DNA of 64,000 nucleotides, taken from positions 85,870,001 to 85,934,000 of the forward strand of contig OZ286459.1 in assembly GCA_965644265.1 (NCBI GenBank), in the 5' to 3' direction. Source of the stretch: Glycera tridactyla. Taxonomy: Eukaryota. How positions within the stretch are numbered: position 1 is the first letter of the stretch; every line of letters starts with the position of its first letter. The notes under the pieces are model-generated. The model saw only the letters and a program-made list of their open reading frames with translations. It was not told where the DNA came from and made no database searches. Position numbers and translations under genes: made by a program. Of the stretch, positions 3,001-49,624 are shown piece by piece.

Positions 3001-4545
3001 GCCATGGCAACGGTTTCAGGAGGTTTTGAGCAACCAAGTATCTTCTTCATTGAAAGCCTACAAACGGATCAATAACAATATGTATGGGTTTTGGTATGAA
3101 ATCCTGCTAATATCCAAATCCCTAGAGCAAATTTGAAGAAATAGGACATAGTCACAGGAATCCCTCAGAGGTGCATTAATCACTTGTGTGGCCTCTTCAA
3201 CACATCATATTGTAGCAACGATTGAGAGTGGGAAGACTTACATCAAGGTCATTGACCAATCTCTCAATGATATTGATCACATGTTTAATGTTTGATTGGG
3301 CCTTTGAAAGTTCTGAGGTATTTATCTCTATTGTCAGGGATGTTACGACTTTACTTTACGCTAGTCATTGTGAGATGTACTAGATTGTTGATGTGATTGC
3401 ACAAGTCATCAGGAGAGTTACATGAAAATTGACCGAATCACTGGGAGGCATTGCTATGGTCTAATTGCATTGATGTCTAATCTGCTCTGCCATTCCAGTA
3501 CTATAGGTCGGAGTAATTGCCAGTGATTATTCGAGATTGCTCAACCTAAAGTGCTTACAGAATCTACCATACACTTCTGTACATTGGCTGATGCTGACTG
3601 TGCTGCACGATATCACATAACAATATGTAAGATCATTATCCTAATACTGGCATATGATATTAACTTACTTGACTTTATTGTGGTCTCCCTGTGGTGGACA
3701 TGATTATATGATGAGAGGAGAATCACTCCTCATAGTTCCATGTTGGAATACCAGATTTTGCTCTCCACAAACCCACAAGCTGAATTACATCGCGTCTCCC
3801 ACAATAGGTCGTTGGGTGTCTATCATCCTTTGAGTTTGCTCAATGATAAACGGTGGGGGGATACCAGTGCTCCATAAAAATGTCATCTAGAAGGAATTGG
3901 GCTATATCGTTTTAGTCTTTCATGCACTACAACATAGCGCATGATCTGATAATTGGTTAGGACTCATACATAAGTTAAAGATATGACGCTGGGTACAGTA
4001 AAGTAGTTACTGGAGTAATCCTAGTTCGAGCGCATTGAGAACCATAAATATTAGCTTCCGAATCAAATGGATAAACGTGTGGAATGATGGATAATAACAA
4101 TGAGATGAAATGTACAGACTATGGCATTTGTCATTTGAATCTTGTGGTTCATGCAACAATAGCCCACTTTAGTCTGGTGTCAATGATCGGGTAACTTTGT
4201 AAAGGTGAATCGAAGGATTTATCAAAGCGTTGATCAGAGACTGACTACATTTGTCCGTGTCTATGTTCACATACACGTGAAAGGTCAATTACGTCGCTCG
4301 GATTCTGTGGACGCTTGAAGTTTATGTGTACAGGGATCAAGTGAGGTTCAGTCACTTTGTTTATTTACTGAATGGGCATTGTCCACAACGATGAGTAGGG
4401 CTGCCGGTCAGATGGGTGACCGAAATGAATGAATTTTGTCATTCTTTACGTGACCTGTACCATCACACAGATTTGAAGGATGTGAAGGTAACTGTGTGGA
4501 ACCGTTGCACTCCATCAATCTATCCGACTAAGATGTGAATGAATT

Positions 4546-4990
4546 GTCATTATTATTATCATTATCATTACTATCATCATTATTACTATCATCATTATTA
4601 CTATTATTAGTGCTATTTTTATTGTTATCATTAGCATTATTATCATTATTATTACTGTTAGCATTGCTAACTCTGAAGTAATGTCACCGAAAAATTGAAG
4701 GACCTGTCCTCCGTGCCCTGTTTCGCATGACGTCATGATCGGTAAAATCATTGATGTCATAGGGGTCCCCGTACGAGGTATTACCATCATGGCAAATGGC
4801 AGGTCCATGGTGTATCATCATCATCATTATCATAATCATCATTATCATGAGCATCATTATCATTATCAATGTCATCATTATCGTTATTATCATCATCATC
4901 ATTATTATCACCTGTATTATCATTATCATAATCATTATTGTCATTATTATTTCATCATCATTGAGGTCATCATAATTGATAGTTGTTATT
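4546..4990. repeat. Degenerate (ATT/ATC)n and (CAT)n trinucleotide tracts
   Basis: Visible tracts at about 4546-4665 and 4813-4975. They produce poly-I, poly-M and poly-H pseudo-ORFs. Confidence 0.93.
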
Positions 4991-6215
4991 AGATTGTTGA
5001 AAGACAGGAGCTGAGAGAGGTGATGCTAGTGACCTTCCGTCAGAATATTATCTCCGAGCCGGATATGTGTTTCACCTCAGAAGCAAGCGGCGATGGCCTG
5101 TCACCACACAATGTACCTCCGTCAGTTAATGTCAAAACACCTCGGATGGGAAGTCACACAACAGAAGGCCAGGTTACTCAAGTAAATGGTATTTTCAAAA
5201 GCCTCCCAGTTTGCGCCATCCAAGTTCTACACAGCCTGTCCTGGCGAATAATGGAGAGCAAACTATGGGTATCAAGTGGCTTCTCTCTGACATTCTCTGA
5301 AGATTGTCGCTTCCGACTTATTTAGGTGTCCACTATATTGATTGCTGTTTGGTCTACTTAATACGAATTCATCCTTCAATACACATGCTTATAGCAATGC
5401 TGCTGGCTCACTGCTAGCATTTGCCTCCCTCCCAACAGAAAAGGCAGCAATTGATCAAAGGTTCCATACATATCTCACGGACCGACAAATAGGAAAACCG
5501 TCCTATGCCACAAGGTCATGAACAGTGGGAATGTGAGTTCGTACATGATATTGCTCGACTACGTGCTAGCGTTTTGACAGGATGTCTCCAAATCCATTTA
5601 GAGGGCACACACACCATTGAAATGGGTACAGAACTCAAAGTTGAACTCATCCATAATGCAGAACGCATTCACTTTGTCTCCATAATCTGGAAAAGCATAT
5701 AGGAATTTCAGTATGGATACACCTGGTGTTAGTAGAAACGTGCCAAACACGATGCTTTCCACGGAGTGCCGCGACACATATTTCATGGAATCAATTTGTA
5801 CATCGCTGAGATTTCGGTGAAAGAGGTGGGTCTAAACCCCCACCATTAATGCCTGAGGCCTCTCGCCCCGATCCACTGATGGATTTTCTTGTACATGGTT
5901 AGCAGCAATATGTGTAGTAAAAAGAGGTGCCACTCACCCCTCCATAAGCTTTCAAGATAGGAAAAGCTTTTGGATTTGTTGATTCTTCATGCATGTCCTT
6001 TGGACATGGGTGTGATGAGAGGAATCTCTACTCTCCACAGAGAAATGACATGTCGACACATATTCTCAATGAAGGCCGACAGTGATGACTCAACCCAATT
6101 ATCTGCCAACGGACGTCCTGCCAAAACAAGACAGTGAATTTCCGTGTGGATTACAGCAAACGTGAACTGATGTTGGTCCCAACATCGGAGAACCAACGAG
6201 CATGATAGTGATGGT

Positions 6216-6507: not shown

Positions 6508-9500
6508 CACCATTACAGCCATTAACTTCATAAAAAAAAAACTCACTGTCAGGCTGGTATAATGACTTCTTGTCTTCTGAAGAATCACATTTGCTGGAGT
6601 CATCTGTGGGCTACAATCGCCTTTCCGCCTTTGTACAATCTGATGGGCATATCAACTATGATGTCATATAATTGTTAGTGCATAGAAGCATCCTATTACA
6701 ACAGTCCTCTGAATGTTTGTGAAGGAGCGGCCTTGTGCATGCTGCCAATACCAGCAAGTGGATGATATGACAGTCTGTATACATATGAAGCAAGCGGAGG
6801 AGCCACTTATCGGAAGAGGCGGAGATCAGAAGCGAGAACGTACACCAGTTCAATATGCTGGCGCATACTAATCGAATCTCTCTAAAGCACGCATAGACCA
6901 ACATAAAGATATGGTGGATTGCTCTCAACAGAGGCACTTCAATGCATTTGTTGAAGTGTTGGTTGGCTGTCAACCTCCTTATTGACATAAACGGGCATGA
7001 AAGTCGTTCTAGCCAGGTCCATAGTCAGACCGATCTGTCACTCCAGAGTGATATGGATATCAGTGTATTTCCCTTGATCTGGATCTCTTTGGTGGTCGTG
7101 GTTGCCGTGTTTCCTACAGTTATTGTTGTGATAGTGGTGACGCTGGTGGTTGAGATGTGATGGTGATGGGAGTGGTGGAACAGGGGGTAGCGCTGGTACG
7201 GTGGACATTACAATCCCGAATGTGGTGGTATAGAATAAGTCTGCTGTCGATGCCACCACCAGTTTGACCATCTCTGCCACCAATGTGCCACCAACAACAA
7301 CGTCACTGAGGACACCAACTCGACCATAACTAACACCCAAACATGCACCAACTCCTCCGATCACCCAGCTAGCTTTAGTATTGCCTGGCCCCTGTTGTTG
7401 ACTATCTCTGCTGGTTATTGTGCTATCAAAAGTAGGTCTGCTTTGATGTGATCACGTACTTCTATTCACCAGGTCCCAGTTGTCAGACTCTTGGTTAATT
7501 GTTCTAATGCTAACAGGGATTGGTGAAAACTACTATCCTAGTGTCTTTCATATGTAGGCGAATGGATATTTGGATGATTGCCCACTGCACTTTGGTGGAC
7601 AGATGTAGTCTTTCGCCCTGTGATACATGGAGTAGCTGGACGAAATTAGTGTCCATTAGCGTTGATCGGGAGGGAAAATGCAGATGTGTTGATTGTATTT
7701 TGTCTTACTAATCTATGCTCAAGCCCAGATGAAATAGCTTCCTCTTTGTGGCAAGAGAGTGTAAATAAAGTTCTGTTATTTTGATCGATTCCACCACATG
7801 TCTGCGAAATGGCGATTCTGTTCATCAAGAAGAAATTCACTTGATATGCGAGAACAACCTAGAGACCACGAGGAGTGGTATCAAATGATATAAGAAGATA
7901 AGACGAGCTCAATTAGTTCGATGTATTAGTTTGGATGAAGTTTCCAGCTCGGTACAACAATTGGTTAATACACCTCATAAGGATGGAGGCAAGTCCGGGA
8001 GATTGCAAGATCATATATAAACTCCCGAGGTTAGAGCCATTGTATTCATTTGAGGATCCGGAAACACAATTTCGAGCTACTACCTCAAATATATGCGTGG
8101 TCAAGCTTTTGGTTTATGTCCGTCGGCCCAATCGTGGCCCGATCTTTAATCCGTCCACGGAACCTGTAAATGTTGCATCACAGTACATAGTATAGCTCTG
8201 CATACTCTAGTATTTGACTTTACACCCTCCATCCGCTTCATATTCCAAATCCCCTGCAATGTTTTTGAATATTCTCTTGAAAATACACATGTAATTAGCA
8301 AATATGATACGACCTCTGTCGATGATATAATTAGAAGTATCCTGGTGGTAAGATGAGACAGGAGAGGGGTGTACATCCACAAAAGATTTGTGGGAAGTTC
8401 ACACTTACGCCTATCGGCCTGGGAAATGCAGGAAGAACTATTATGCTTGAATAAAGTCACCGTCACGCAATGTTCCGAAACAGTTATCAACCATTATCAA
8501 CTTTATTTATGGTGGGTTTCTACAAAGCTATTCAAATTCGAACAAAATTAAAGATAACTATGAATGATCCCAACTTGCAGCAGTTGGTTTCCGATACCCA
8601 CCATAGACCCAACCTGCCTGTTTGATTGGTTCGGTATGGAAGGGTTATTGCCAGCCGAGCCTGGTGCTGTCATACTATCCTCGGTGTTCGCTCATATATT
8701 CTTGTCTAAATCACTTGTCTTTCTCCACAATACATTGCTGAGGCCAGGGGTTATGGTGACCATCGTGGTCTAATCTCTTGCAGCCGTGCTTTGTCATACA
8801 ACTGACGTCATCTGAGTCGATGTGACGTCTATCTTCGTAATGACATCGTGTTTTGAGATCATGTTGGGACTATTTCATAACAATTATATCTTCAGCATAT
8901 AGATCATTCTGTCTAACCCTGCTTGTCACTTCAATCGATGAAATGTTCTACCTGGTGAGCAATGGGGGTACACTTTGACTATGTAGAAAATTGCTCTTAT
9001 AAATGTTGAAGCAGCTGCATTGTGAACATTAAATCTATTCTCGTATTTGAAAATGCTGGTGATTGAGGTATGTCACACAAATGATCAAGTGAGAATGAGA
9101 AAAGGTCGATAAAGGAGCATCCACATGATCTTGTAAGCACATTCACATTGCTCTTTACAGTCAGAGAATTATGTTGCTGAAAAAAGTTGTTCGCACTTTG
9201 ACTTCAAACTCAGCCAACAGATATGCGAATAGTGAAGACACCTTTTCGGAGGTCTTCAGTTACGTTTGCTAGAAAAGAGAGGTATCTCCACGAGAAGACA
9301 TCATATGGTTTGGAGAGGATAGCAAAACGATTTCGCAATTGTGATGCTTGACCTGTATCAATGCGACAACGTTCTCTCTTTTTCCCACCCTTTTTAAAAA
9401 TTGGTGATTCCCAGCATCAGGAATTGCGTTTCTGTCCTTGAGCCAACTAGGCAATCTCGGATAGGTCAAGCTGTGGACTATGAAGCCTGGTTCCTTCCTA

Positions 9501-10067
9501 AATGATGACCACCTTCTTTCACATCTCTGCCTAATGGGAATTGCTGCAGGCTATGATTCTTTGACTAATGGTCGGTGCTAATCAAGTTGACTAGATTCTC
9601 GTTGACTCACTCATGTTGGATCAATTTCCGGATCGATCCAACAATATGCCTCTCTCCGATCTAATAGAAGATTAGTTCTTCTGATGGTGTAATCTTCTAC
9701 CTTCATCTATGGAATTCAACTCACACATGCATCTGAAACCTACAAAATCTGATCTCATATATATATATATATATTGTTTCTTTATTTTGATTCGTCAATT
9801 GTAGTATATACATATACAAATATACAATGCCTCCAGTCGAAGGCGTTCCCAATGCGACGAATTATTATTACTGATACAATAATACATTTATGCTGTACCC
9901 ACTCAGTTCCTATATAATCGATCTTTCTGGTTTCAGACAATCCAAATAATACACGGGGTTGACATAATTAAAGTGAGAATGACAAATGAGGATGAAGATG
10001 AAGATGAAGACCCAATTGGAGAAGGAGAAGATAATAGAGGACGTTCCATTAGCTATGTTCACATGTT

Positions 10068-10089
10068 TGTAGAGAACATGTTCTCTACA
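10068..10089. other. 22-bp perfect palindrome (hairpin) in the LINE 3' UTR
   Basis: tgtagagaacatgttctctaca equals its own reverse complement. Confidence 0.85.
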
Positions 10090-10343
10090 TAACTACGACT
10101 CTATAGTAGACAATTAAGACAAATATTGTATAAAGATGAAATTTGGATAATAAAATGGATGATAAAATAAGTTTTCAACCAATGACTTGTTTTAATTTTA
10201 ATTTTGATTTTACAGTCTCACAGATTAAAATTCCAGAAATTAAGTTTAGGTATGATGCTTGATCTGATTTTTAGACTCAGACACTGTACAGAACATCTCT
10301 AAAAACAATAACACTGTCTATATCCTTCAAATGAGAGCTATAT

Positions 10344-13274
10344 TCAGGCAATATGCATAAATAGCTTCAACTGTTCCTTAAATATTTTCGGTGGTTTGCT
10401 TCCAAATTCTTCAAAATCTCTCACATAATTATTCCATAGATTACTACCTCTAAATTGAAAAGATCCTTCTGCCATTTTTGATCGTGGCTGATGTATTGAC
10501 ACATATTGCTTGTTCAAGGATCTGGTATGATAGTCATGTGATACATGCAGATAGGTACATAATGGATCATATTGTGGATGCACATTTCCTGTCAATATAT
10601 TATTAACATGTATCAGGGTATGGTACTGTCTACGACAGTCAAGGTATGGCATTTTTAGCACATTATGTACTTGGGATGTCCTTGTTAGAGGAGCACTTCG
10701 AGTTATTATTCGAAAAGCTTTATTTTGTACTTTTTGGAGTTTACTAGCATTTACCATACCCAGACTGTCGTAAACAATATCACAGTAATCAAATATAGGA
10801 AGGATGAGCGTCCTATACAGCATCAGGGACACATCTCGGCTGAGTCTGTCCCTGAGTCTGCCCAGGACACCCACCCTTCCCATAGTTTTTGATCTAATGT
10901 ATTCAGCATGACCTGAGAAGCTCAACGTTTCATCGAGGATGACTCCTAAATATTTAAAAGTCTTTGTTTGCTTTACCAATTCATTTTGGAACATTATATC
11001 GAAATTACAGCGATTTACCTGTTGTCTTGATCCAAAAATCATGATTTGCGTTTTTTTTATATTTAGGCTAAGTTTATTTCTCTTTAGCCAAATACTGGCT
11101 TGATTAAGAGCATTCTCAAGTCTTGTCTGTAGTACAATTGGATCCTTATTAGACACCATAATAGCAGTGTCGTCCGCATAGAGACTCATACTGAGCCCCC
11201 TCATAGAATGTGATAAGTCATTCACGTATATAGTGAACAACAGGGGGCCCAGTATGGATCCCTGCGGAACTCCACATGAGATTTCACATGCCTTAGAGGT
11301 TACTCCGTTTACTTTTACCTGACATGTTCGGCCTGTCAAATAACTCTCTATCCATTTCATACACATTGGGTTTGCACCGTACCTTTTCAACTTCTTGAGC
11401 AGAATGCCATGGTCTACCGTGTCAAAAGCCTTCTTAAGATCCAAGAAAAGGACCCCACTGGTATCTCGTTTTTCAATATTTAAATATATTTTATCTAAAA
11501 ATTCTAGTAAACATGTGCCAGTGGAGCACCCCTCCCTGAATCCAGACTGCTCTCGACACAGTAGACCATGACTTTCTAAATAGTTTGACACTTGGCGATG
11601 AATTAATCGTTCCAGGACTTTACCAAGGGTACATAAGAGACTGATGGGTCTGTAATTTGACTCACACGTCCTACTACCTTCTTTAAACAATGGTATAATG
11701 GTTGCCGATTTCCATTGGGTAGGAAAAGTCCCTTCTAGGATACTGGTATTGTATAAATGCTGTAAAATAGGGCATAAGGATTCTACACAATTTTTTATAA
11801 TTTTCGCACTGATCCCATCATCTTTTCCGGCTTTCGATGGTGACAGTCTATCAATTGCCTTCTTTACATCATGCATGTCAACAGTCGATAGGCTTAGGGT
11901 ATTACTTAGGTTATACGGAAAGTTTACAATAGGATCAGTCCCGTCACTTTTGATGGTCTCACTTAATTTATTCCCTATGTTACCAAAGAATTCATTTAAG
12001 CATTCAGAAATTTCATTTTTATCTGTTTTGTCTCCAATTTTCATAATTTCAGTTGAACCTTTCGATTTTCCCCAAAAAGCATGTATAGTTTCCCACAATT
12101 TCCTAGGTTCTGATTTATGTTCTTTTAGCGAGTCTTCTATATATTGCCTTTGGAGTTTACGTTTTAAAATCTTGCATCGCTTTTCTATTTCTTTCTTTAT
12201 TGTTTTGTTAATTTCAGAATTTTCTAATTTAAAAATCCTATTTGCTCTTTCTCGTTCCTTAACCAAGTCAAGGTATTCTCCCGTTAGCCATTTCGGCCAG
12301 TTTTCTCGGACTCGATGCCTTTTCAACGGGATATTTTCTGTTATGATATCATTCATAACCTGGTGGAAAATTCTAGTGCAGTTATTGGTATCATTACTAG
12401 AAAAGAATTCATTCCAGTCTGCAGATCTTATTTTATCCTGAATTAATTTAAAATCAGCCTTGGCAAAGTCTCTGAAAAAAACAAATTCGGATGCTTTTGA
12501 TACAGGCAATTTCTTTCTTACAACAATCAACATACTATGGTCTGATATGCCTGTATCAAAAACTCCATGCTGGTGGTAGAGTTCTGGGCAGTTCACATTA
12601 AAATGATCAATCAGGGTTTTTGAAAATTCGGTAACCCTAGTGTGCTTTGTGATTAATTGTGTTAAGTTATTACTTTTCAATGTTTTATAATATTGATTAT
12701 TTTTATTTAAAGTTACCAAGTCGATATTGGTGTCCCCGGCTACCAAAACATCCCCAAATTTACACTGTTCAATTTTTATAAGACTCTCATCCAGCCAATC
12801 ACAAAACACACTCTGGTTTCCGCTGGGGGGTCTATAAAGACCACATATATAAATCGGTCTAGTATCTGGGAGCAACAGTTTCATCCAGAGGGCTTCAATA
12901 TCAGGGCAACATATAACTGTGTCATCCATAAGTTCAACAATACGATTCTTTCGAATGTATACAATCAGTCCTCCTCCGGTTCGCTTACCACTTTCAACTG
13001 TTCTATCGGCTCGTATGATATAATACCCCTGGATACTAAGTTCTGAATTTTCTATGGTTGGTGAAAGAAATGTTTCAGACAGAATGAAAATATCAAGTTT
13101 ACTCTGTAACAAAAGTAATTGTATGTCATCCACCTTTTTCACAAGGCTTCTTATGTTGAGATAGCCAATTTTCACCCCTTTAAAGTCATTGCATTCATTT
13201 ATCGATGCAAGTTGTCTAGTTAGTTTCTGGAAGTCCTTCTTCTCACATGCAGGTGGGTCTATTTTTGATGACAT
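10344..13274 (-). CDS. LINE ORF2: APE endonuclease plus reverse transcriptase, 976 aa, intact
   Basis: APE motifs YLNIRSL, LSETFL, GLYRPP, GDTNID, LIDH, SDH. RT motifs NYRPISLL, QSGFR, FLDLKKAFDTV, GVPQGSILGPLLF, YADD, KYLGV. C-terminus YHTRS...SFQFRGSNLWN is typical of the CR1/L2/Crack group. No stops or frameshifts. Confidence 0.97.
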   Translation of the reverse strand: MSSKIDPPACEKKDFQKLTRQLASINECNDFKGVKIGYLNIRSLVKKVDDIQLLLLQSKLDIFILSETFLSPTIENSELSIQGYYIIRADRTVESGKRTGGGLIVYIRKNRIVELMDDTVICCPDIEALWMKLLLPDTRPIYICGLYRPPSGNQSVFCDWLDESLIKIEQCKFGDVLVAGDTNIDLVTLNKNNQYYKTLKSNNLTQLITKHTRVTEFSKTLIDHFNVNCPELYHQHGVFDTGISDHSMLIVVRKKLPVSKASEFVFFRDFAKADFKLIQDKIRSADWNEFFSSNDTNNCTRIFHQVMNDIITENIPLKRHRVRENWPKWLTGEYLDLVKERERANRIFKLENSEINKTIKKEIEKRCKILKRKLQRQYIEDSLKEHKSEPRKLWETIHAFWGKSKGSTEIMKIGDKTDKNEISECLNEFFGNIGNKLSETIKSDGTDPIVNFPYNLSNTLSLSTVDMHDVKKAIDRLSPSKAGKDDGISAKIIKNCVESLCPILQHLYNTSILEGTFPTQWKSATIIPLFKEGSRTCESNYRPISLLCTLGKVLERLIHRQVSNYLESHGLLCREQSGFREGCSTGTCLLEFLDKIYLNIEKRDTSGVLFLDLKKAFDTVDHGILLKKLKRYGANPMCMKWIESYLTGRTCQVKVNGVTSKACEISCGVPQGSILGPLLFTIYVNDLSHSMRGLSMSLYADDTAIMVSNKDPIVLQTRLENALNQASIWLKRNKLSLNIKKTQIMIFGSRQQVNRCNFDIMFQNELVKQTKTFKYLGVILDETLSFSGHAEYIRSKTMGRVGVLGRLRDRLSRDVSLMLYRTLILPIFDYCDIVYDSLGMVNASKLQKVQNKAFRIITRSAPLTRTSQVHNVLKMPYLDCRRQYHTLIHVNNILTGNVHPQYDPLCTYLHVSHDYHTRSLNKQYVSIHQPRSKMAEGSFQFRGSNLWNNYVRDFEEFGSKPPKIFKEQLKLFMHIA

Positions 13275-13679
13275 GTTGATGAATTTATGGATGATATTCT
13301 ATATTTTATTTCTAAGTAGAAAATAGTTTGAGTACAGCAATAGTTATATCTACTACGATCAAGATGTTTAGTGTATGTTACTATAGTGTATTTTGTATAA
13401 AACAAAATAGACTTTTCTCTCTTTGTGGGACAGTAGGTCCTACACCAACTTAGGTAGTCATAATAGTTTCGAATAGAAAGATAAAGCTGTACTCCAGCAA
13501 AAAGTTATAAAATTTTTAAAACATTTTTTTAAATTATCAGATCAGGGGGGAAACCCCGAGAGGAATTCTCTCCAGAGCTGTTTTACTCCATTCAAAGATG
13601 CTCTATAACTTACTCGAAATATGATTTCTAAATCATCTTTGCATGGCAGACGATGGACACTTGATCAAACAATAGAAAC

Positions 13680-14170
13680 GAAAGCTTGAATTTGTAACTC
13701 CCCATAGCATACACTGAGGGAATTTAGAACACAGACATTTCCTACTGGAAAACACTTGACAGTGAATAAGCAAACAAATATAATCTGAGTAGATAATCAC
13801 GTTTTGAGTCACCTTTGAAAAATTGTTCAAATAACATGTCAAAATAAAGACGAAAGCGTGAATTTGTAACTCCCCATAGCATAAACTGAGGGAATTTAGA
13901 ACACAGACATTTCCTACTGGAAAACACTTGACAGTGAAATAAGCAAACAAATATAAATCTGAGTAGATAATCACGTTTTAGGTCACCTTTGAAAATTTGT
14001 TCAAATAACATGTCAAAATACATTGAGAAAGCTGGGAGCAAAAGCATTTCCTGTTGAAAAGAAGAAAAGAAAACAAAAGAAAACAAAAGAAAACACTCGG
14101 CAATAAGTAATAATCAGAAATAAATCTCAGTGGATAATCATATAACGAGTCACCTCAGGATAATGTTCAA
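13680..14170. repeat. 172-bp tandem repeat (two near-identical copies plus a degenerate partial third) upstream of ORF2
   Basis: gaatttgtaactccc starts at 13688 and at 13860. A diverged partial copy lies at about 14110-14180, and a short (gaaaacaaaa)n run at about 14065-14095. Confidence 0.92.
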
Positions 14171-15680
14171 TTAACATAACAATCTGGTACAACTCTGAAA
14201 ATAATATAAGCATGCTGATTAAGGTTCTACTCAGATAAAATAAAATAAAATAAAGTACGAATCTTTTGGCTGTCTGACTCTTGAGAAGTTAGGTGTTCTG
14301 TTTTATATTCAATCCAAAACTAAGTTTTAATGGATACAACATATTCATGATTATATCAATAGCCATCAATGTCTCCCAATTTTTGGGAATGTCCTAATGC
14401 AAAATCAAATTTGTAATAGGGATGTTCTTCATTATACTTTAGCGAAGCAGCTGATCTTATTAAACAAAATAAAACATACTGAACAAAATGAAGCAAAGTC
14501 AATGCAGAAAAATGACTTCATGATTCACCATATCTACTCATATATTCACTCTTCTAATTCAGTCAAACCCATCCTAGGCCTGAATCTTTTCATCTTCTAA
14601 TCAAGTTTTTAATGCAAGAAACAAGAACATATGAGCAGTATAGAAACTCCTACAGGATATTTCTACATTGCAGATCAATATTTGCAGTGAAACATTGTCA
14701 TAAGAAAGATCTCAGCCCTGATAGTATTTGAGCAGTCATGCACTCTGTTTCATAATCAGATTACACAAAACAATTTCTAAAGCTATTTCTGAAACTCACC
14801 TCCCATTTCACCATGGAGCATTTTGTACACATTACCATGCCTCCTTCACAAACACTTAGCCTAGTAGTCAATGTCTAAGATGACATCATTTTTCTATAGA
14901 AGACAGTAAATCATCCTATAGATCAAAAAGCTTGCTAAGTTAGATCTATTGCATTATAGAATGAGTCCATTATATTTACTTCTGATCAATATTACATCTG
15001 TGTATTCACACAATACAGATGAAAACCTTTCATTGGGAACCAACATTCTCTTGACCTTTCTCATCACATTTCTCGGGCATTCAGTAGGTGCAATGACTTG
15101 GAGAGGCAGTGCTGGCACTAGAGAATTAAATTTTGACACAATAATTATTCAATTATAATATAATATCTATCAGGCATTTTTGCAGCATTTTCTCCCAGGA
15201 CCACAGCCAACGGTGAGAACCGGGATACACTCCTCTGCAACTCTACCCTCTTCCAGAACATATTTATTTAGTATTGTAATAAAGTGCAAAATCTTCACAA
15301 CCTTGAAACTAGAATAAATGTATAAGGCATCTTAGGACCACAGCCAATGGTGAGAGCCTGATGCCTCAAATCTATCCCAGCATGTGTGCCAGATGGCACA
15401 ATTTTATTTATATATGGATCCTGTGCCAGAGACCCGCCTCACCAGTTCACTGCATCCACCTGCTCCTTTTGGGTTGATAGATATTCTGATACATTACCCC
15501 TTAAAACATCACTATACATACCATCCCAATAGCAAAAAACAGGTGCACATTCAAAATAGTTTCCTATCGACTAGGTATATGTTTCATCACATGTTTGGTT
15601 GACAATTTTACAGAAACATAAGTTCACATGCATAGTAGTTTCATGAAATCCAGCTGATTTGGTACATGTTTCACCACATT

Positions 15681-16556
15681 TTATGTAGCATAAAACCAGT
15701 TGTCCAATAAAGGTCCAACCACAGAGTAGCATAGACCAAGGTTACCGTATTGATTTAGGTGTATCTTATCTGAAAGAAACATACCATTCATAATATCCCC
15801 ATGGGAACAAGGTCTCTTTTTCTTCTGTTTCTTCAGCAACCTCATGAGCTGAGAATATGTCTCAAACGGCTTGACGAAAAGATGGTGTGTATGTAGAAAA
15901 AGCATTTTAATGAATGCATGATTTTTAAGATAATGATCCACCCACAAGCCTAACACCCGGGTTTCATCATCCCACCCATGTCTCCATGTAATTGGTATAA
16001 AGCAAAAGGTGGTAAGCGGGAAGAAGCTATGCAGCAATATGAGTACTTCACATATTTTATTTATAAGATAGCTATATTCATCATGTCGCATTTTGATGAT
16101 CTTTCTTTTCCGAATACGTGGGTCCCTAATGTTTCGATTTATGGTTCTTATTTTAGTAGCGAAACGATCCAAATCGTTTGAGCCCAAGACCAATACCAAG
16201 TAGTTTGGTGCTCTTTTGGCGTCTACCAGTTTCTGTAGAGTATTGCCATATCTTCTTGTCTTCGTGGCTCCTGCCTTTGTCTTTGCAAATATGCCTTGGA
16301 CTTCGTTTACAAAGCAGCCCCAGCTGGCCCCACTTATTCCCTTGTATTCCCATGAAGTTAGTAGGGATTTCATTGTGTTTTCCTGTGGCATTTCTTGAAC
16401 AAATTTTCCTAGCCTCCACACATGGCTACTTCCAAGAAAAGTCACATCCGGTCCTCCATAGGTATAAAGGAGGTCTCTACGACGATATGCTGGGCAAGTC
16501 TCATGGCTCCAATTCACTCTTTGTTTGGCAGCATCAATAGCAGGTTGATATTCCAC
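15681..16556 (-). CDS. SGNH/GDSL hydrolase (esterase), predicted exon 2, 291 codons
   Basis: Block I FLGSSH (catalytic Ser), block II GISG, block III VLGSND, block V DKIH. The frame starts at GTG directly after tttgctag, an acceptor-like sequence. Confidence 0.88.
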   Translation of the reverse strand: MEYQPAIDAAKQRVNWSHETCPAYRRRDLLYTYGGPDVTFLGSSHVWRLGKFVQEMPQENTMKSLLTSWEYKGISGASWGCFVNEVQGIFAKTKAGATKTRRYGNTLQKLVDAKRAPNYLVLVLGSNDLDRFATKIRTINRNIRDPRIRKRKIIKMRHDEYSYLINKICEVLILLHSFFPLTTFCFIPITWRHGWDDETRVLGLWVDHYLKNHAFIKMLFLHTHHLFVKPFETYSQLMRLLKKQKKKRPCSHGDIMNGMFLSDKIHLNQYGNLGLCYSVVGPLLDNWFYAT

Positions 16557-17113
16557 CTAGCAAACATATAAGACATACAAAATTTAGTTATCAAATTAAG
16601 CATATCTAGGTATACAAAAACTTTGGAATATATTTCAATTTTAAGGTATCACATATATAGTATTTAATTTACTTTGTTGACGTGTTATGCATTTATATGC
16701 CTTCATTCTCACCATATGTCATCAGGATTTTCATCACACTAGTTAATCTTTACATGCCAACCTCAGGCCTTAAAGAGAAAAAATAAGATGCGCCCTTGTT
16801 TGGCCAAGAGCTCACACGTGCGCGCGTCATATTTCGAAATTACACGCTACACTTATTACTAGTTCAAAAATTTCTATAATGTGTTATCTCTACATACCTT
16901 CACTCATATCCTGTATCATTAAAAATTTTATGGTTAAATTTACATGCCATATTCCATTATAGAGGAGAGAGAGTTACATTCTTGTTTTACCAACTGCTCA
17001 CACGTACACGTGTCCGTTGCTGAAACCACGCGCTACCGTGTTATTCGCAATGCTCGTCTAATTTATGATAATTTTCAACTCGCGTATGTCACAGTACGGA
17101 AAGCAATAGATAC
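16557..17113 (-). other. Predicted 557-nt GT-AG intron in the SGNH gene
   Basis: Begins GTATCT and ends aactaaattttgtatgtcttatatgtttgctAG, with a branch-like ctaaa and a U-rich tract. The interior is AT-rich with no long ORF on this strand. Confidence 0.6.
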
Positions 17114-17185
17114 CTCATTTCGATAGCCCATGTGGAAGTCTTCTTCCCTTCTATTTGTTATATTAGCGGCGTGACTTGAAGCCAT
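17114..17185 (-). CDS. Predicted exon 1 of the SGNH hydrolase gene (MASSHAANITNRREEDFHMGYRNE)
   Basis: ATG in gaaATGG context, 24 open codons, ends GAG|gtatct in phase 0. This matches the phase-0 acceptor at 16557. Confidence 0.62.
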
Positions 17186-17252
17186 TTCGAGGGCTTATTT
17201 CTCGTGTGTTTATCACCGGAAATAGTATCTATGTCGTCGCACATGCGCATCA
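17186..17252 (-). promoter_or_regulatory. 67-nt CpG-rich spacer between ORF1 stop and SGNH ATG, with NRF1-like and ETS-like motifs
   Basis: TGCGCATGTGCG at 17238-17249 on the minus strand (one mismatch to the NRF1 consensus) and CCGGAAAT at 17216-17223 on the plus strand. Confidence 0.3.
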
Positions 17253-18854
17253 TTAGATTCCGGTTTTAGATCCGCGGCTTGTTCGATATTTTGGTTTCCG
17301 TGAACCACGACCAGATTTACCTCCTCTCACAGCTGTATCAGTTGAGTGTTTTAGGTCTGGGAAATCATCTTGGTTTGGTATATACGCCCCTCCAAAATTC
17401 AGTGTTGATTGTCTCATGGATTTGAAACTTTGCTCTTTTTCCAGAATTTTAGATTTTATATTCTGTAATTTTTTTAAGTTATCACTTTTTTGGGGGTTTG
17501 CACCTTTCCCTTGGTTACTTTCCTTACCTTTAGATTTAGAGAAAATCTGTGGGTCTAAATTTGGTCCGGATGAATTATCGAAGTCACTGAATTGTTTAGG
17601 CATATTGGTTTGATCCAGATCAGATGCTGATTTGGGAAGCGTCAATTTTGTTGAATTTGCTGTAGTTACCGGTTGGGGTGGATCATTTTCCTTGTTACTG
17701 TTCTTTTCTTCATTCCCATCTACAGAATGTTTTTGATTTTTCCCAGCTCGTTTGATTGCATCTATCAACGTTTGTTGATTTCTGAGCATTATTTTATTCT
17801 GATCTCTTCCATGTGAAATGCAGACTCTTCCGTCCTGCGTCCAACAGAAGGCGATCTTACCTTCTTTTTTTGCTTCCCTCGCAAGACTGAAAAGTCTCCC
17901 CTCCCATGGTGTGAGTTGTTCACGAAGAAAGTAGTTGGTGCCCTTTAGGGATATCTTATTTTTTAGTGCTTTTCGTCTTAAGTTAGGATCGCAGAATCTT
18001 ACCATAACAGCCCTTGGTCTATCTTCTCTGATTGGTCCATACCTGATCACTTGACAAATATCATCCAATGTAATAACTAGGCCTATATTTTTAGCAAAAA
18101 AGTTTATAACATGTTCATGTAGGGTAACATTCTTCCTTATTTCTAACCCTTCAACTATCACAACGCTGAGTCTCTCTATCTTCTGTACGAGATCAATATC
18201 AATCTCATTCTTTTCTATTCTCTCTTCAGCATTATCCATTCTGGATGACAGTTGATATAAGAAATCCTTTATGGCATCCGTATCTTCTTGTGAAGTGTCG
18301 ATGAGATCGTCTGATTCTATCGCTTTTAACTCTCTTTCACTTTCAATGGCTAGTTCTCTCAGTTTATCTTCCGTGGTTTTTATTCTTTCTTCGTGGTCTT
18401 GTAGTTGGGCTTCATTTGTCTTTAGGCGGTCTTCGTGGTCTTGAAAAGCTTCTACTAGCCTATGGTGCTTATCCAGCATCTCTTTCTTATTGTTTCTTGA
18501 TGCGTTCTCTATCGACGTTTCCACGTAATCCTCTATGTCCATCCTGCAAGCTACTCGTATTTCAGCAAATTTATGTTGCAATCTATCGTCAATAACATTA
18601 TCCGCTTGAGTTGTAACAAGTTTCCGAGCAAGATCAATAAATTCATCATTGATTTGCATCCGTCTTTCCACTGCCAGATTTACTTTATTTTCAATAAGTT
18701 TGTCAAAAGCAACTGAATCAGTCATGTAGCTCGCATCTACTTTCTCACTGACTTGAGTCACATCAACATCATCACCATTATCCTTCAGTGACATAGTAGT
18801 TTTGGTTTCATAGCACTCTTGTGGGATTTGCATGGACTCGTCAATTTCGTCCAC
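17253..18854 (-). CDS. LINE ORF1 (transposase_22-like nucleic acid chaperone: coiled coil, RRM, CTD, basic tail)
   Basis: Coiled coil with repeat QDHE[DE]R[LI]KT; RRM-like VVIVEGLE...RYGP...RPRAVMVRF; CTD-like FLREQLT...WTQDGRV; basic C-terminus. The track start is GTG. First in-frame ATG is at 18833, and the frame stays open about 53 codons upstream of 18854. Confidence 0.88.
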   Translation of the reverse strand: MDEIDESMQIPQECYETKTTMSLKDNGDDVDVTQVSEKVDASYMTDSVAFDKLIENKVNLAVERRMQINDEFIDLARKLVTTQADNVIDDRLQHKFAEIRVACRMDIEDYVETSIENASRNNKKEMLDKHHRLVEAFQDHEDRLKTNEAQLQDHEERIKTTEDKLRELAIESERELKAIESDDLIDTSQEDTDAIKDFLYQLSSRMDNAEERIEKNEIDIDLVQKIERLSVVIVEGLEIRKNVTLHEHVINFFAKNIGLVITLDDICQVIRYGPIREDRPRAVMVRFCDPNLRRKALKNKISLKGTNYFLREQLTPWEGRLFSLAREAKKEGKIAFCWTQDGRVCISHGRDQNKIMLRNQQTLIDAIKRAGKNQKHSVDGNEEKNSNKENDPPQPVTTANSTKLTLPKSASDLDQTNMPKQFSDFDNSSGPNLDPQIFSKSKGKESNQGKGANPQKSDNLKKLQNIKSKILEKEQSFKSMRQSTLNFGGAYIPNQDDFPDLKHSTDTAVRGGKSGRGSRKPKYRTSRGSKTGI

Positions 18855-21800
18855 TTGAAGTTCCGCCTGGCTGAACGTGACACCGTCTTGTTGCTTATCG
18901 TCTATTTTTGGCTCCTGGCGATTCGATTCAACTTCTAGATCATTTATCGAGCCCTTCTCTGATATTTGGGTCGATGTGATAAAACTCCCCGAAGTTACTA
19001 CTATACGGTGCGGTTAAGAATAGAACAGGGGAATTCATGAATGAGCTAGTAACATCATGTTTGCTTTGTGCGATATGGTTACAAATGGAATGATAAATCC
19101 CATAGATACCCCAACAAAATGTCCTCGCCAAACATCGTCATGTCTGGTATGTGCAATATAGTCAAGAATGATACACTCCGTGTTGAACAACGTCATGTTT
19201 GATACGTAGAATATGTTCATGAATAGAACAGTGGTACACAAAATATGTCGTCGAAAACATGGAGAATAAGGTTGAGAATGGTACAATGGGACACATAAAT
19301 ACCTCTGACGTGTTTAAATTTCTCACAATTGTCACTGTTAATGTGGGAAGCATGGCATGGCAATGATTGAATTGTTGTCAGCCATTATATACCGAGGATT
19401 GCACATTGCACGACAACATCACATCAGCCTGGCTCACACCTTGCCTTTCTCTCACCACCTGATGCGTAGATACTTGCCAGTTAGATACATAACCCCATCA
19501 TCAACAAAGGGCCCTATCCGAAGATCTTTCGATATATCTCCATGTCAGTGTCTAGAATCCGTCGAAATAACAGCAGGTCTCAACTATCTCTCTTTTGAGA
19601 ACAAGGAGGAGATTTTTGAGAAAATTGGCACTCGAAGGATCACGATCTCGGACGTGTTCACAGACCATGGCTGGCTGGTCCGTAGAAGGCTTGCACGTGT
19701 ATCCCTGTCAGTCTGATATTTGGCTAAGGGACTCAGACATTCTCAGACAAAGACCCTTCTTCTTCGACAAATGATATTCATTTTCCGGAGGGAACTCTCA
19801 CAATCAACGTTATATTTGTCACAAATCCACATGTATGATGATCAAAACCTACCTTTAAGTCTTATATGTTCAAGACGGGACTGAAGCCATTCAACGTTAC
19901 ACATTCAATCGATCACGTTCGAATCAGTGATATCTCAAAATAAACAATTTCTGAAGAAACCCAAGTCCTCACAATAATCTTCCTAGCCAGGATGGAATCT
20001 TCAACGAGAGTGCATACCCTCTCAACAGATAATCCTGAAGAGTGCCCGCCACTTGGATACATCATTCACTGATCACTCAAGTGAGCTAAAGTCAGCTACG
20101 TTATGAGAACTCCATTCGTTGATGAAATAGAGCCATCCATCAGATGTCAGCTTTGCACTCTTTGACATAACCGCTTACCATTGTCAGAGCATCAAACCGC
20201 TCAGAATATTCTTGCCATTGAGACTTGATGGAGTGTCACCAAACAGCTCATGCAACACCTCTGGAGCCATCTCGATAACAATGCCATATCTGAATGGTAA
20301 TAGTCATGTTTCTAATCTTTTGTAGGTGAGTAGAAGCATAAGCCATCCTGGATGCCAGTCATGATAGTATAAGTATGAGCTTTCACTGTAAATAGCCGAC
20401 AGCTGATGATATGGTAGCATGACTGACATATCGTCGAATGGTTTTTGTCGAATGTCGGGAAACTTCTGTCGTAAAAGATATGTAAAGGTGACAAAAAATG
20501 GAAGGGTTGATGGAGATACATGCCATTCGTATCCTTTGATAGAACAAGTTCTGACTTTGGTATACCGGAGTGGTGATGTTGTGACCAATTTTGGCGAGAA
20601 ATATGGCAATTTCGTGATGAGTGACGCGATCTTTGAACTACATGTATGTTGTAACAGCCACTAGTCACATATTTTCATATGGTCAAATTAGCCACCCACA
20701 ACATAATCAATTGCGCAGTACACATTTTCGGTGCGTTTCTCTTAATGGCGTGCAAGGCAGGAACTTGGCATGGCTTGAAGCTTTTCATATTCTCCGTTAT
20801 ATCAAACGAAGGACTTGTGACAATGATGAAGGACTTATGATATGATCATATTTCCATCTGTCCATGGATATGAAGGGATCATAGGACTTTCTTCCAAGAT
20901 GAGTGATGTGGTGATAAGGGGATGATTTGACATGATGAAGTAGTTCGATTCTACTACCAATAAATCGAAATGTAATTTTGCAAAGACGGCCAGGAAAATG
21001 ACGCCAACTTCGACACAGCTGTACCTCATTGTGCACATGTATCTAGAACTTGATAAACTCACATATAACAATCACATCAGAAACCATACTGCCAACATCC
21101 GAAGCCATCCACTGGTTGTCATGATCTCATTGAATAACCATTCGCGGGTGGAGAATTCCATTCCATGATGAAATGTACTGATTTGGATACAGTTCAATCA
21201 TAATTGACAAGCAATAAATTTCGTGAGAATTTATAGAATCTGGTATTCTCGAGTACATGATAATTCAATATGGGACAAGATGCTTGAGAAATATGAATTA
21301 TCAACACAGGAATATTCTTCAAGTGTCCTCAATTTAGATGAGATGTCGCGTGCCAGGGTTTGCTCCCAATTGAAAAAAGTTGAAATGACCCTTCTCTATA
21401 CGGTCATACAGGTGTTTCCATTGTGTCAAGTTGTTGTCCTCGTAATGAAAAATGAAAAAAAAAATGGTGGTTGGTCGTTTTTTCTTGTTTTTTATGTGTT
21501 TTATTGCTTATCGTGCAATCATGTTTTGACAATAGACGTGGGTGGAATCATCTAAAATCTTAATGGAAGATAAAACTACAACAACGAGATCATTCAAATA
21601 GTATGCCTATGTACATCTTGAAACATCTATTTTTGCTTGCACATAATTGGTCGCCATCGCTGACAGAAGCTCTGTGGCTACCGGAAGAGAAGGTGGAAAA
21701 AGGAACCATGATGGCCGGTCAACATTTCGTGGGCACCACTTCATCAATAGTAATGCCCTTTTGGAATGCAGAATATCTTGCTAATTGGGAACTCCATCTT

Positions 21801-46857: not shown

Positions 46858-49624
46858 ATGTTACAATTCCCTACTCCCTTCCCACTCCCAGATCTTGAAT
46901 ATTCAATTGCTGCACTGTCGAGACAGAGGCGAATAGGATTTGGATTTCTCAACGTAAGAAGCTTAGTTCGAAAAATTGATGACATCAATATTCTTCTCAT
47001 CAGAAGTGGTCTTAAGCTGCTAGCGCTCTCTGGAACATTCCTAAATGGATCAATCTGCTCGGCAGAACTAGATATCCCTGGATATACATTACATCGTGCT
47101 GATCGCACACCAGCGAGTGGGAAACTATGTGGTGGTGGTATTGTGGTCTATACAGATAGTAACTATGATTTCATTTTGGTGGAAAATTCCCACTACGTTT
47201 CCCCAAATATTGAGATCCTGTGGCTGAAATTGTCACTCCTGCACACTCGACCAACTTATATCTGTGTGATCTATCGGCCCCCATCGGGTAGTGTGAACGT
47301 GGTATTGGACAAACTAGAACTAAGTCATTTACACCTGAATCCAGAGGCCTTTTCAGACGTCATATGGCTCGGAGATATAAATGTGGATTTCCGTAAAAAG
47401 ACCCCTGCTGCTCGTAAATTACGTCGTATAGGCTTAAAATACCACATGTCTCAACGCATTCGATCCCCAACCAGGGTCACGAGTGAAACTGCCACGATGA
47501 TAGATCACATCTGGGTGAATAACACCACCCAATTTTCGTATTCAGGAACCATACATCCGGGGATCAGTGATCACTCCTTAGTATTTATCTATCGTCAGCG
47601 TGCAAAATTAAGCCGTATACGACATTGCTTCAGTTACAGGACGAAGAAGGATCTAGATACTGGTACATTAAATAGAGATCTCCCCGAGCGTTGCGATCGA
47701 ATTGAGGTCTTGAAAGAAGACATTGACGGAAGCATCAGTGTATTAAATGGTGTATTTAAAGCCGTACTGGACAGACGAATGCCTATAGTATATAAGACTA
47801 GAAGAGTCACAAATGCCCCGTGGGCAACTGATAGTTATTTGACCGGGGTGGACAAGCGCACCTATTGGTCGTCTTGCTACTCAAATACTGGCCATGGAGA
47901 CCACCTGAGGCAAAAACTAATGTGCGCAAATGAATGCATGGAAATCAAACACTACCTTAAGAGAAACCATATTAATGACCCTATTATAAAAGCAGGGGAG
48001 GATAACCGGAAATTATGGAATATCTATCGCTCTCTTTACCCTAGGGCCAGGGCCACTGGCCATACCATACCCAAGATCAGGGGCTGTCTCTCTACCGAGG
48101 AGGGTGCCAACTGCCTAAATGAATTTTTTACAAATGTTGGTCCTGAACTCGCGGCGGAAATAGAATCAGTGCCCACAGAGACATTGCCCTCCCCGCCCAC
48201 CGATAAGTTCACCCTACATGAAATTGATGAGACGGATATAGAAAAGATTGTCTCAAACCTGAAAAAGTCCAATGCTACTGCCGAGGATTCTTTCTCTAAC
48301 GCATACCTGTCACTCACTCTACCGGGGCTACGGAAGATTCTCACCAAGATAAACAATGCCTCACTGGAAAGAAGTATATTTCCTGCCAGTTTAAAACGAG
48401 CTATAATAACACCCATCCCGAAAACTAATAAACAATGTGACCCAGGGGATTTTCGCCCAATTTCAGTTCTACCGTGTGTCGGGAAAGTCTTGGAGCGAGT
48501 GGTGAATAATCAGCTGGTGGATTATCTAAACGTGAATAAAACCGTGTTGAGGGCCCAGGCGGGGTTCAGGAAGTATCACTCCACAGTCATGTGCCTAGCG
48601 GGCTTTACAGAACACATTTATGGGGCAATAGATGAGGGCAAGATGGTGGGGGTGATCTTTCTGGATCTCGCAAAGGCCTTCGTCACGGTCAACCATAATC
48701 TCTTGCTTGAGAATCTCCTGACAATTGGCCTTGATGAGGTATCCTTGGAATGGGCAAACAGTTATTTGAGCAAACGATCCCAGGCTACTAGGCTTAGCAA
48801 TACTGTATCCTGCCTTCGAGAAGTGAAATGTGGAGTACCACAGTCTCAAATTGTTCTTTAAGCGAAGAAAATTGAGCTTGAACTTATCAAAGTCTTGCTT
48901 CATGATTTTGGGTTCTAAAAATAGGCTAAATGCTAATAAAGCTGAGACAGACACTCTGGGTGATCGCCTTGGTATGAAACAAGTCGTGTCCATGAAATAT
49001 CTGGGATTCTTATTGGACCCAAGTCTGACGTTTAATGTACATATCTCTAAGCTGATCATAGATCTACAAGCTCGAACGTCCCAGTTACGACGTAATAGAT
49101 CCTTGATGAGCCTATATGCTGCCCGACAAATAGCACTTTCCGTTATAATATCTCCGGTCAACTACGGGTGTACAATCTATGGGGGAGGTAGTGTGACACT
49201 CTTAAAGAAACTGGTCGCTGCTTTTAACGATCTACTTCGTACTGTCTGTAGAATGGACTCAAGTGTTCTACAACCTCACCTTCTAAAGGCTTGTAACCTT
49301 CTGAGTCTTGAGTCAATTCGGAAAAAACAATTGTTGCTAGAAACCTTCAAGATACGCCATAATGAAACCTCCATTGAACTACGTACGATCTTTGAGAAAT
49401 ACATGCCGGACTACTCAAGGGAATCATTGCGAACTAGAAGTCATGAGAGAGGGGGTATGTTGCCTCCACTTCGAGAGACCGAACTTGGAAAACGTTCATT
49501 TACTTTCCGCTCGATATCACTATGGAATAATCGTCCAACTGATCTACAAAATGCAACTTCCACACTCGCATACAAACGAGCACTACATGAATATTTCTAT
49601 AAAGAGATGCAGAGCCACAGTTAA
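46858..49624 (+). pseudogene. CR1/L2-group LINE ORF2 (APE-RT), inactivated by an internal deletion and frameshift
   Basis: APE motifs FLNVRSL, IYRPPSG, GDINVD, MIDH, SDH. RT motifs DFRPISVL, QAGFR, DLAKAFVTV. GVPQ joins directly to LKLFFKRRKLSLN in another frame at about 48843, so GSILGP...YADD is missing. The thumb and HER...SFTFRSISLWN C-terminus are retained. Confidence 0.95.

Follow-up and report, generated by a model that had tools for sequence, protein, structure and literature searches.

Can a long interspersed nuclear element (LINE) carry, as separate genes, the two kinds of protein that have so far been treated as alternative solutions for forming its ribonucleoprotein (RNP), an RRM-type ORF1 and an esterase-type ORF1? 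The question is raised by a block on the minus strand of a 64,000-nt stretch of Glycera tridactyla DNA (contig OZ286459.1; the whole stretch is here called the window), reaching from position 9758 to about 19350. The original prediction for this block was one LINE encoding an RRM-type ORF1, a separate SGNH hydrolase, and an apurinic endonuclease-reverse transcriptase (APE-RT). With a probability of roughly 0.8, we likewise read it as a single copy of a lineage of retrotransposons lacking long terminal repeats (non-LTR) with a three-gene layout. Judged from sequence comparison, the lineage is an old, invertebrate one in which an RRM-type ORF1 has been kept together with a separately encoded esterase. 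The prediction also took the LINE esterases known so far to be domains of ORF1p, and this agrees with the published surveys (PMC3905857, PMC4120745). In Repbase, as noted in the only structural study, esterase-type ORF1p never occurs with an RRM, and redundancy or mutual exclusivity of the two has been suggested (Schneider et al. 2013, PMC3905857). Esterase ORF1s were found only in vertebrate CR1/L2 subgroups and without any three-ORF layout (Metcalfe and Casane, PMC4120745); such a layout is likewise not described in a 2026 survey of vertebrate CR1-group elements (PMC13343379). Targeted literature searches, which did not extend to Repbase/Dfam entries, found no paper on this three-gene architecture.

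The element and its three genes

Three stop-free frames lie on the minus strand in the order ORF1, SGNH and APE-RT (19013-17256, 16556-15684, and 13274-10344), all in one codon phase. As predicted, they sit within one AT-rich block (GC 0.30-0.42, against 0.40-0.48 in the flanks) that ends in AATAAA and (TA)n, here (TA)8 at 9773-9758. The element is about 9.6 kb long and its sense strand is A-rich. It is an APE-type non-LTR retrotransposon: APE and RT share one open reading frame (ORF), there are no LTRs, and the tail consists of AAATAAAG and a microsatellite instead of poly(A). Neither long terminal repeats nor flanking direct repeats around the element were found in the window, and an Rfam scan of the window gave no match. 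Membership in the CR1/L2 group is hinted at only indirectly, by the microsatellite 3' end and by an ORF1 esterase of relatives whose best match is ZfL2-1.

The APE-RT frame starts with an ATG and runs for 976 aa; it is not a product of chance because it comprises 976 stop-free codons in DNA of 35-40% GC. Pfam identifies RVT_1 at 4.8e-42 and, weakly, Exo_endo_phos (0.0053). The APE residues N40, E67, D181, D245, and H246 and the YADD motif of the RT are invariant in an alignment with four relatives, whose own Pfam matches include PF03372 and PF14529. The closest database relatives of the RT share about 30-39% identity with it; in the protein collection searched, the best match reached 33% and none was at or near identity.

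The first gene is open from 19013 to 17256; the first ATG in this frame lies at 18833, and the stop codon occupies 17253-17255. Its product combines an acidic, helical N-terminal half, an L1-like RRM, a conserved block C-terminal to the RRM with a W-x-x-x-G motif, and a basic tail. It is called an L1-like (type II) ORF1p with an RRM because a profile of the central region, built from 12 sequences including the window ORF1, matches LINE-1 ORF1p structures in the PDB: human 2ykp/2yko at 2.8e-9, the RRM domain 2w7a at 1.4e-7, and mouse 2ldy at 5e-7. A profile of three sequences reached 0.02 at best against the same kind of structure. The alignment to L1 ORF1p begins in the end of the L1 coiled coil. 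Pfam returned weak, sub-threshold matches, to DUF2959 for the window ORF1 (0.017) and to coiled-coil-type families for the ORF1 of a related element (L002), and a word-indexed homologue search with ORF1 found nothing.

The middle gene, 291 aa without an internal stop, escaped routine searches: the single sequence matched nothing in Pfam or the PDB, nor did a word-indexed homologue search find a match. Its identification came only from alignment-based methods and from HMMER, run exhaustively over 1.8 billion representative proteins, which recovered 39 homologues. The SGNH blocks are readable in the window ORF (I, GSSH; II, G76; III, GSND; V, DKIH, that is, D263-x-x-H266). In the family alignment S44, G125, and W195 are invariant, and conservation reaches 90% or more at G42, H45, G76, and N127. 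The family profile matches solved SGNH enzymes, including acetyl-xylan esterase (4e-4) and PAF-acetylhydrolase Ib. An AlphaFold2 (AF2) model made from the alignment has a pLDDT of 90.9 and a pTM of 0.89, against a pLDDT of only 32 for the single sequence. Foldseek aligned this model with 43 PDB entries at E <= 1e-3, and the top matches that name a natural enzyme are all SGNH/GDSL-type hydrolases (probability 1.0, TM 0.5-0.6 on the target). Two long helices, inserted at residues 126-178 between block III and the next strand, are specific to the family. A fold search among viral proteins returned generic phage SGNH domains only and no specific relative. The original assignment did not register in Pfam with the single sequence, but family profile, motifs, model, and fold matches agree on it, and the middle ORF can with confidence be called an SGNH hydrolase, predicted to be an esterase. 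Its place among the esterases of other LINEs is suggested by a single profile-profile comparison, in which hhalign matched the window SGNH family to four classical LINE esterases (probability 96.8%, E 2.5e-10); on this comparison the window SGNH would be a divergent branch of the LINE-borne esterases of CR1/L2-type ORF1. The ZfL2-1 ORF1p esterase structure 4c1b is absent from the top 50 fold matches of the SGNH model. One of the classical esterases in that comparison, from a relative (L095) whose ORF1 consists of coiled coil plus esterase, matches 4c1b at 2e-7.

Gene order in relatives and competing readings

Whether the three genes belong together was judged from the contigs of close relatives and from 160 RT-bearing loci, retrieved with the RT alignment from metagenomes and from animal-host DNA contaminating 'bacterial' metagenome-assembled genomes (MAGs) and scanned with our own SGNH, ORF1, and NADAR hidden Markov model profiles. 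A homologous trio in the same order and orientation occupies a 9717-bp contig of NCBI GCA_029979705.1 (L004), which at 9.7 kb is comparable in length to the window element. Its genes lie at 384-2510 (ORF1, matched by the window ORF1 at E 3e-19), 3061-5415 (SGNH, with an accATGg start), and 6510-9425 (RT). About 2.55 kb separate the end of its SGNH domain from the start of its RT, similar to the 2.4 kb of the window. The two RTs are 38% identical over their full length, and at the DNA level the RT core alone aligns, plus one 23-nt match of chance level. Because DNA similarity is confined to the RT core, the shared three-gene layout is old and not a recent copy; protein identity to the nearest relatives does not exceed 38%, so that synonymous sites are saturated. 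The form of the 3' terminus, AAATAAAG followed by a few bases and a TA- or TAA-type microsatellite, is common to the window, L004 (9620-9717, where the microsatellite is (TAA)n), L091, and L095, and may be the end that the RT of the lineage recognises. Adjacent pairs recur elsewhere: a homologue of the ORF1 C-terminus precedes the SGNH ORF in L007, and the SGNH ORF precedes the RT in L011. Every SGNH-family locus with enough flanking sequence fits the order ORF1, SGNH, RT, and every homologue with a readable context sits in a LINE. All six SGNH-homologue contigs retrieved are shorter than 10 kb (four of them below 2.1 kb), and six look-ups of homologues reached contigs of about 2 kb or less, too short to give a context.

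Trees of the RT, made with FastTree and IQ-TREE (LG+C20), point the same way. The window groups with L004, L010, and L022 with a support of 98 in both. Its sister is the L011 clade (SH-aLRT 86), followed by a clade in which the esterase is fused to an oxygenase (SH-aLRT 85). In the wider clade, whose support is moderate (SH-aLRT 85-86), an esterase ORF is present wherever the upstream sequence of a locus is informative. Elsewhere in the tree, in clades farther away, RRM-type ORF1s are widespread. The predicted combination of RRM-type ORF1, separate esterase, and APE-RT in one LINE is therefore borne out by the trio in L004, the pairs in L007 and L011, and the RT trees.

As an observation on the locus set itself, L089-L168 include intact LINE RTs of animal type, by the dozen, whose assemblies are labelled as MAGs of bacteria or archaea, among them bivalve and gastropod symbionts or their kin (Thiodiazotropha, Sedimenticola, and the Bathymodiolus and Alviniconcha symbionts). 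These RTs are host DNA contaminating the bins.

The same recurrence of trio and pairs, together with the RT trees, makes both chance nesting and an origin of the SGNH gene in the host very unlikely. An APE-RT LINE without ORF1 inserted beside an unrelated unit of ORF1 and SGNH could be imagined from the length of the 2.4 kb spacer, from the AATAAA motifs within it, and from the RT having its own ATG in good context, yet such an accident is very improbable when L004 repeats order, orientation, and spacing at just 38% RT identity, when L011 repeats the SGNH-RT pair and L007 the ORF1-SGNH pair, and when a single form of 3' terminus is shared. That the SGNH ORF belongs to the host, as a gene or an exon lying between LINE fragments, is scarcely credible: it has in its favour an acceptor-like, pyrimidine-rich stretch ending in AG before the frame, but no other exons are evident, the homologues with readable context are all in LINEs, only 39 relatives were found among 1.8 billion representative proteins, and the six family contigs are all shorter than 10 kb. 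A different history of the same element deserves more weight. The esterase may have been the resident and the RRM-type ORF1 the newcomer, a classical CR1/L2-like LINE with an esterase ORF1 having gained an L1-like ORF1 upstream, for instance through template switching with another LINE; on this view it is the RRM ORF, and not the esterase, that is accessory. This is a genuine possibility, if one we would bet against. It draws on the nearest RT clades, in which the esterase stands directly upstream of the RT (alone in L011, fused to a 2OG oxygenase in L018, L024, and L031), and on the reticulate exchange of ORF1 modules between LINEs that is already documented (Metcalfe and Casane, PMC4120745). 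The contigs of the neighbouring clades, however, have less than 0.6 kb upstream of the esterase ORF, so that an RRM-type ORF1 could exist there too, and the wide distribution of such ORF1s in distant clades means that the ancestral state cannot be polarised.

Several observations weigh against the three-gene reading itself. L004 is the sole other locus with all three genes on one contig, and the 64-kb window holds no second copy of the element. No target-site duplication was found at its flanks, and the 5' limit near 19350 is therefore presumed. Two of the AATAAA motifs between SGNH and RT stand only 275 and 415 nt past the SGNH stop. The SGNH family profile has no match to 4c1b at E <= 10. 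Finally, the window SGNH frame follows immediately on a TAG, and no in-frame ATG precedes its catalytic Ser44. We nonetheless prefer the reading as one element with three genes, at the probability given above.

State and expression of the window copy

The coordinates of the element are collected in the table.

Features of the three-gene element in the window (64,000 nt)
Feature	Position	Strand	Basis
5' leader	18834..19350	-	ORF1 ATG to presumed 5' limit
ORF1, 526 aa from first ATG	17253..18833	-	homology to L004 ORF1; LINE-1 ORF1p profile matches
Spacer ORF1/SGNH, 0.7 kb	16557..17252	-	stops in all three frames
Predicted SGNH esterase ORF, 291 codons + stop	15681..16556	-	SGNH blocks, profile, AF2 model
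Non-coding spacer SGNH/RT, 2.4 kb	13275..15680	-	all frames with stops
APE-RT ORF, 976 aa, ATG start, stop included	10344..13274	-	Pfam RVT_1, catalytic residues
3' untranslated region, ~0.56 kb	9787..10343	-	between RT stop and terminal motif; no long ORF; GC 0.30
3' terminus: AATAAA 9786-9781, 7-nt gap, (TA)8 9773-9758	9758..9786	-	read from sequence

The original prediction called the element apparently intact, and this stands in part. ORF1 and RT of the window copy look intact, with complete frames; the SGNH frame is the exception. No ATG occurs in it until codon 56, beyond the catalytic serine, and the closest ATGs upstream are out of frame, whereas an in-frame ATG precedes the whole conserved domain in five of the six other SGNH family loci. 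With no such ATG ahead of Ser44 here and one in five of six relatives, the esterase gene of this copy is judged to be probably defective at its start, unless the assembly has an indel here or the frame is reached by splicing or from a non-AUG codon. Splicing is a minor possibility: the splice-acceptor-like stretch mentioned above precedes the frame, a scan for splice donors to express SGNH gave nothing decisive, and most relatives have an ATG of their own.

A competing reading takes the copy for a dead relic, for esterase function or wholly, that is not recently or autonomously mobile despite its long open frames. We put this at close to an even chance. The missing start and its contrast with the other family loci speak for it, as does the lack of a second copy in the window. 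To be set against them are the complete ORF1 and RT frames, with their ATGs and all catalytic residues, and an esterase frame uninterrupted by stops and with all its catalytic motifs. The conceivable alternative starts count on the same side, and retrotransposition of L2 is independent of esterase activity according to the passage of PMC13343379 that cites Kajikawa et al. (2012).

A second difference from some relatives lies at the other end of the esterase gene. The SGNH ORF extends into a low-complexity tail of 330-480 aa in L004 (3958-5415), L006, and L007 (4320-5322), rich in Asn, Tyr, His, Ser, and Thr in the first two and in Arg and Ser in the third; the ORFs of the window, L005, L008, and L011 have no such tail. 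A remnant of the tail in the window spacer was sought with the full-length L004 SGNH protein (P0062) as query and left no trace. In the relatives that have them, the tails might serve to anchor the esterase on the RNP.

The layout poses the question of how three LINE genes are expressed across kilobase-long spacers. There are 24 ATGs and a degenerate 186-bp direct repeat in the 0.7 kb between ORF1 and SGNH, and 69 ATGs and three AATAAA motifs in the 2.4 kb between SGNH and RT; because of the latter motifs, the unit might be transcribed in two parts. Across such ATG-rich spacers, an internal ribosome entry site or spliced or subgenomic RNA would be likelier than reinitiation as a route to the downstream genes. 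The 2.4 kb spacer also contains, at 13671-14020, a 172-bp unit in tandem duplication, its two copies about 95% identical. By analogy with known systems, the ORF1p would multimerise and coat and chaperone the element RNA, as L1 ORF1p does, and target-primed reverse transcription would fall to the APE-RT. The esterase of ZfL2-1 is an active enzyme, for which a link of retrotransposition to lipids has been proposed (PMC3905857); by this analogy the esterase of the window lineage may act on short-chain esters or lipids, or may help to place the RNP at membranes. A role in lipids, membranes, or the RNP, which the original prediction also entertained, is thus an inference from analogy.

Two further features of the window lie outside the element. 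A 119-aa ORF with an ATG lies at 19357-19716 on the plus strand, just past the presumed 5' end; it has no Pfam match and may be part of a neighbouring repeat. The plus strand at 46858-49624 carries a LINE of a different family, whose APE-RT shares 33% identity with that of the three-gene element and is frameshifted into ORFs at 46858-48861 and 48830-49624, with an N gap at 49947, and no ORF1 was found upstream of it.

Accessory enzymes and comparison with known systems

The position ahead of the RT holds more than one kind of enzyme in the sister lineages: an SGNH esterase, stand-alone or fused, an AlkB-type dioxygenase, or a NADAR domain. In L018 (337-1947), L024 (45-1676), and L031 (3-767), ORF1 fuses an AlkB-type 2-oxoglutarate (2OG)-Fe(II) oxygenase (PF13532, about 3e-18) to a GDSL esterase, and block I of these fused esterases reads SSSMF, not GDS. 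A NADAR domain (PF08719) is found in an ORF upstream of the RT in related LINEs, at 7218-9179 in L002 (6.8e-33), 3722-5176 in L155 (9.6e-24), and 6905-7189 in L003, where it is a precomputed Pfam match on a 94-aa gene fragment. The NADAR domain of L002 is joined to the C-terminus of a coiled-coil/RRM ORF1. No description of NADAR in LINEs was found in the literature. AlkB-like and NADAR domains in the same position of neighbouring elements widen the view of LINEs as carriers of accessory enzymes.

A more general proposal can be offered only tentatively, and we consider it rather unlikely: invertebrate CR1/L2-like LINEs may have, upstream of the RT, a modular site that different accessory enzymes can occupy, and in the window lineage the esterase would act in trans beside a conventional RNA-binding ORF1p. 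If this were true, esterase and RRM functions would be complementary, neither redundant nor mutually exclusive, and the enzymes might be factors of counter-defence or of RNA/RNP maintenance, not structural Gag-like proteins. A conserved lineage with both as separate genes argues that the esterase does something that an RNA-binding protein cannot, and it provides a natural system for the genetic separation of the two functions.

As in LINE-1 with its type II ORF1p, the ORF1 gene comes first, its product has a helical N-terminal half followed by an RRM, and the junction motif aligns to human L1 ORF1p. The window ORF1 differs in having no Pfam Transposase_22 match and less than 25% identity to L1 ORF1p, in being separated from the RT by an extra enzyme gene, and in belonging to a type of ORF1 that in sister elements is fused to a NADAR domain. 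With the type IV ORF1p of CR1/L2-group LINEs, exemplified by zebrafish ZfL2-1 (Kapitonov and Jurka 2003; Schneider et al. 2013), it shares an SGNH esterase upstream of the APE-RT in a LINE with a microsatellite end, the catalytic Ser, Gly, Asn, and Asp-x-x-His, and an (I/L)LPR motif after strand 4. Unlike type IV, however, the predicted window esterase is a free-standing second ORF, in which block I is preceded by only about 40 residues without a coiled coil, it carries the family-specific two-helix insertion, and the same element encodes a separate RRM-type ORF1 upstream. A parallel to an esterase gene of its own comes from outside the LINEs, in the GDSL ORF3 of the Vesta LTR and Athena Penelope-like elements of bdelloid rotifers, which is likewise a stand-alone, additional ORF with intact catalytic residues and was judged unrelated to LINE esterases (PMC5408684). 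There the esterase lies downstream of pol in LTR and Penelope-like elements, whereas that of the window stands between the ORF1 and the RT of a LINE.

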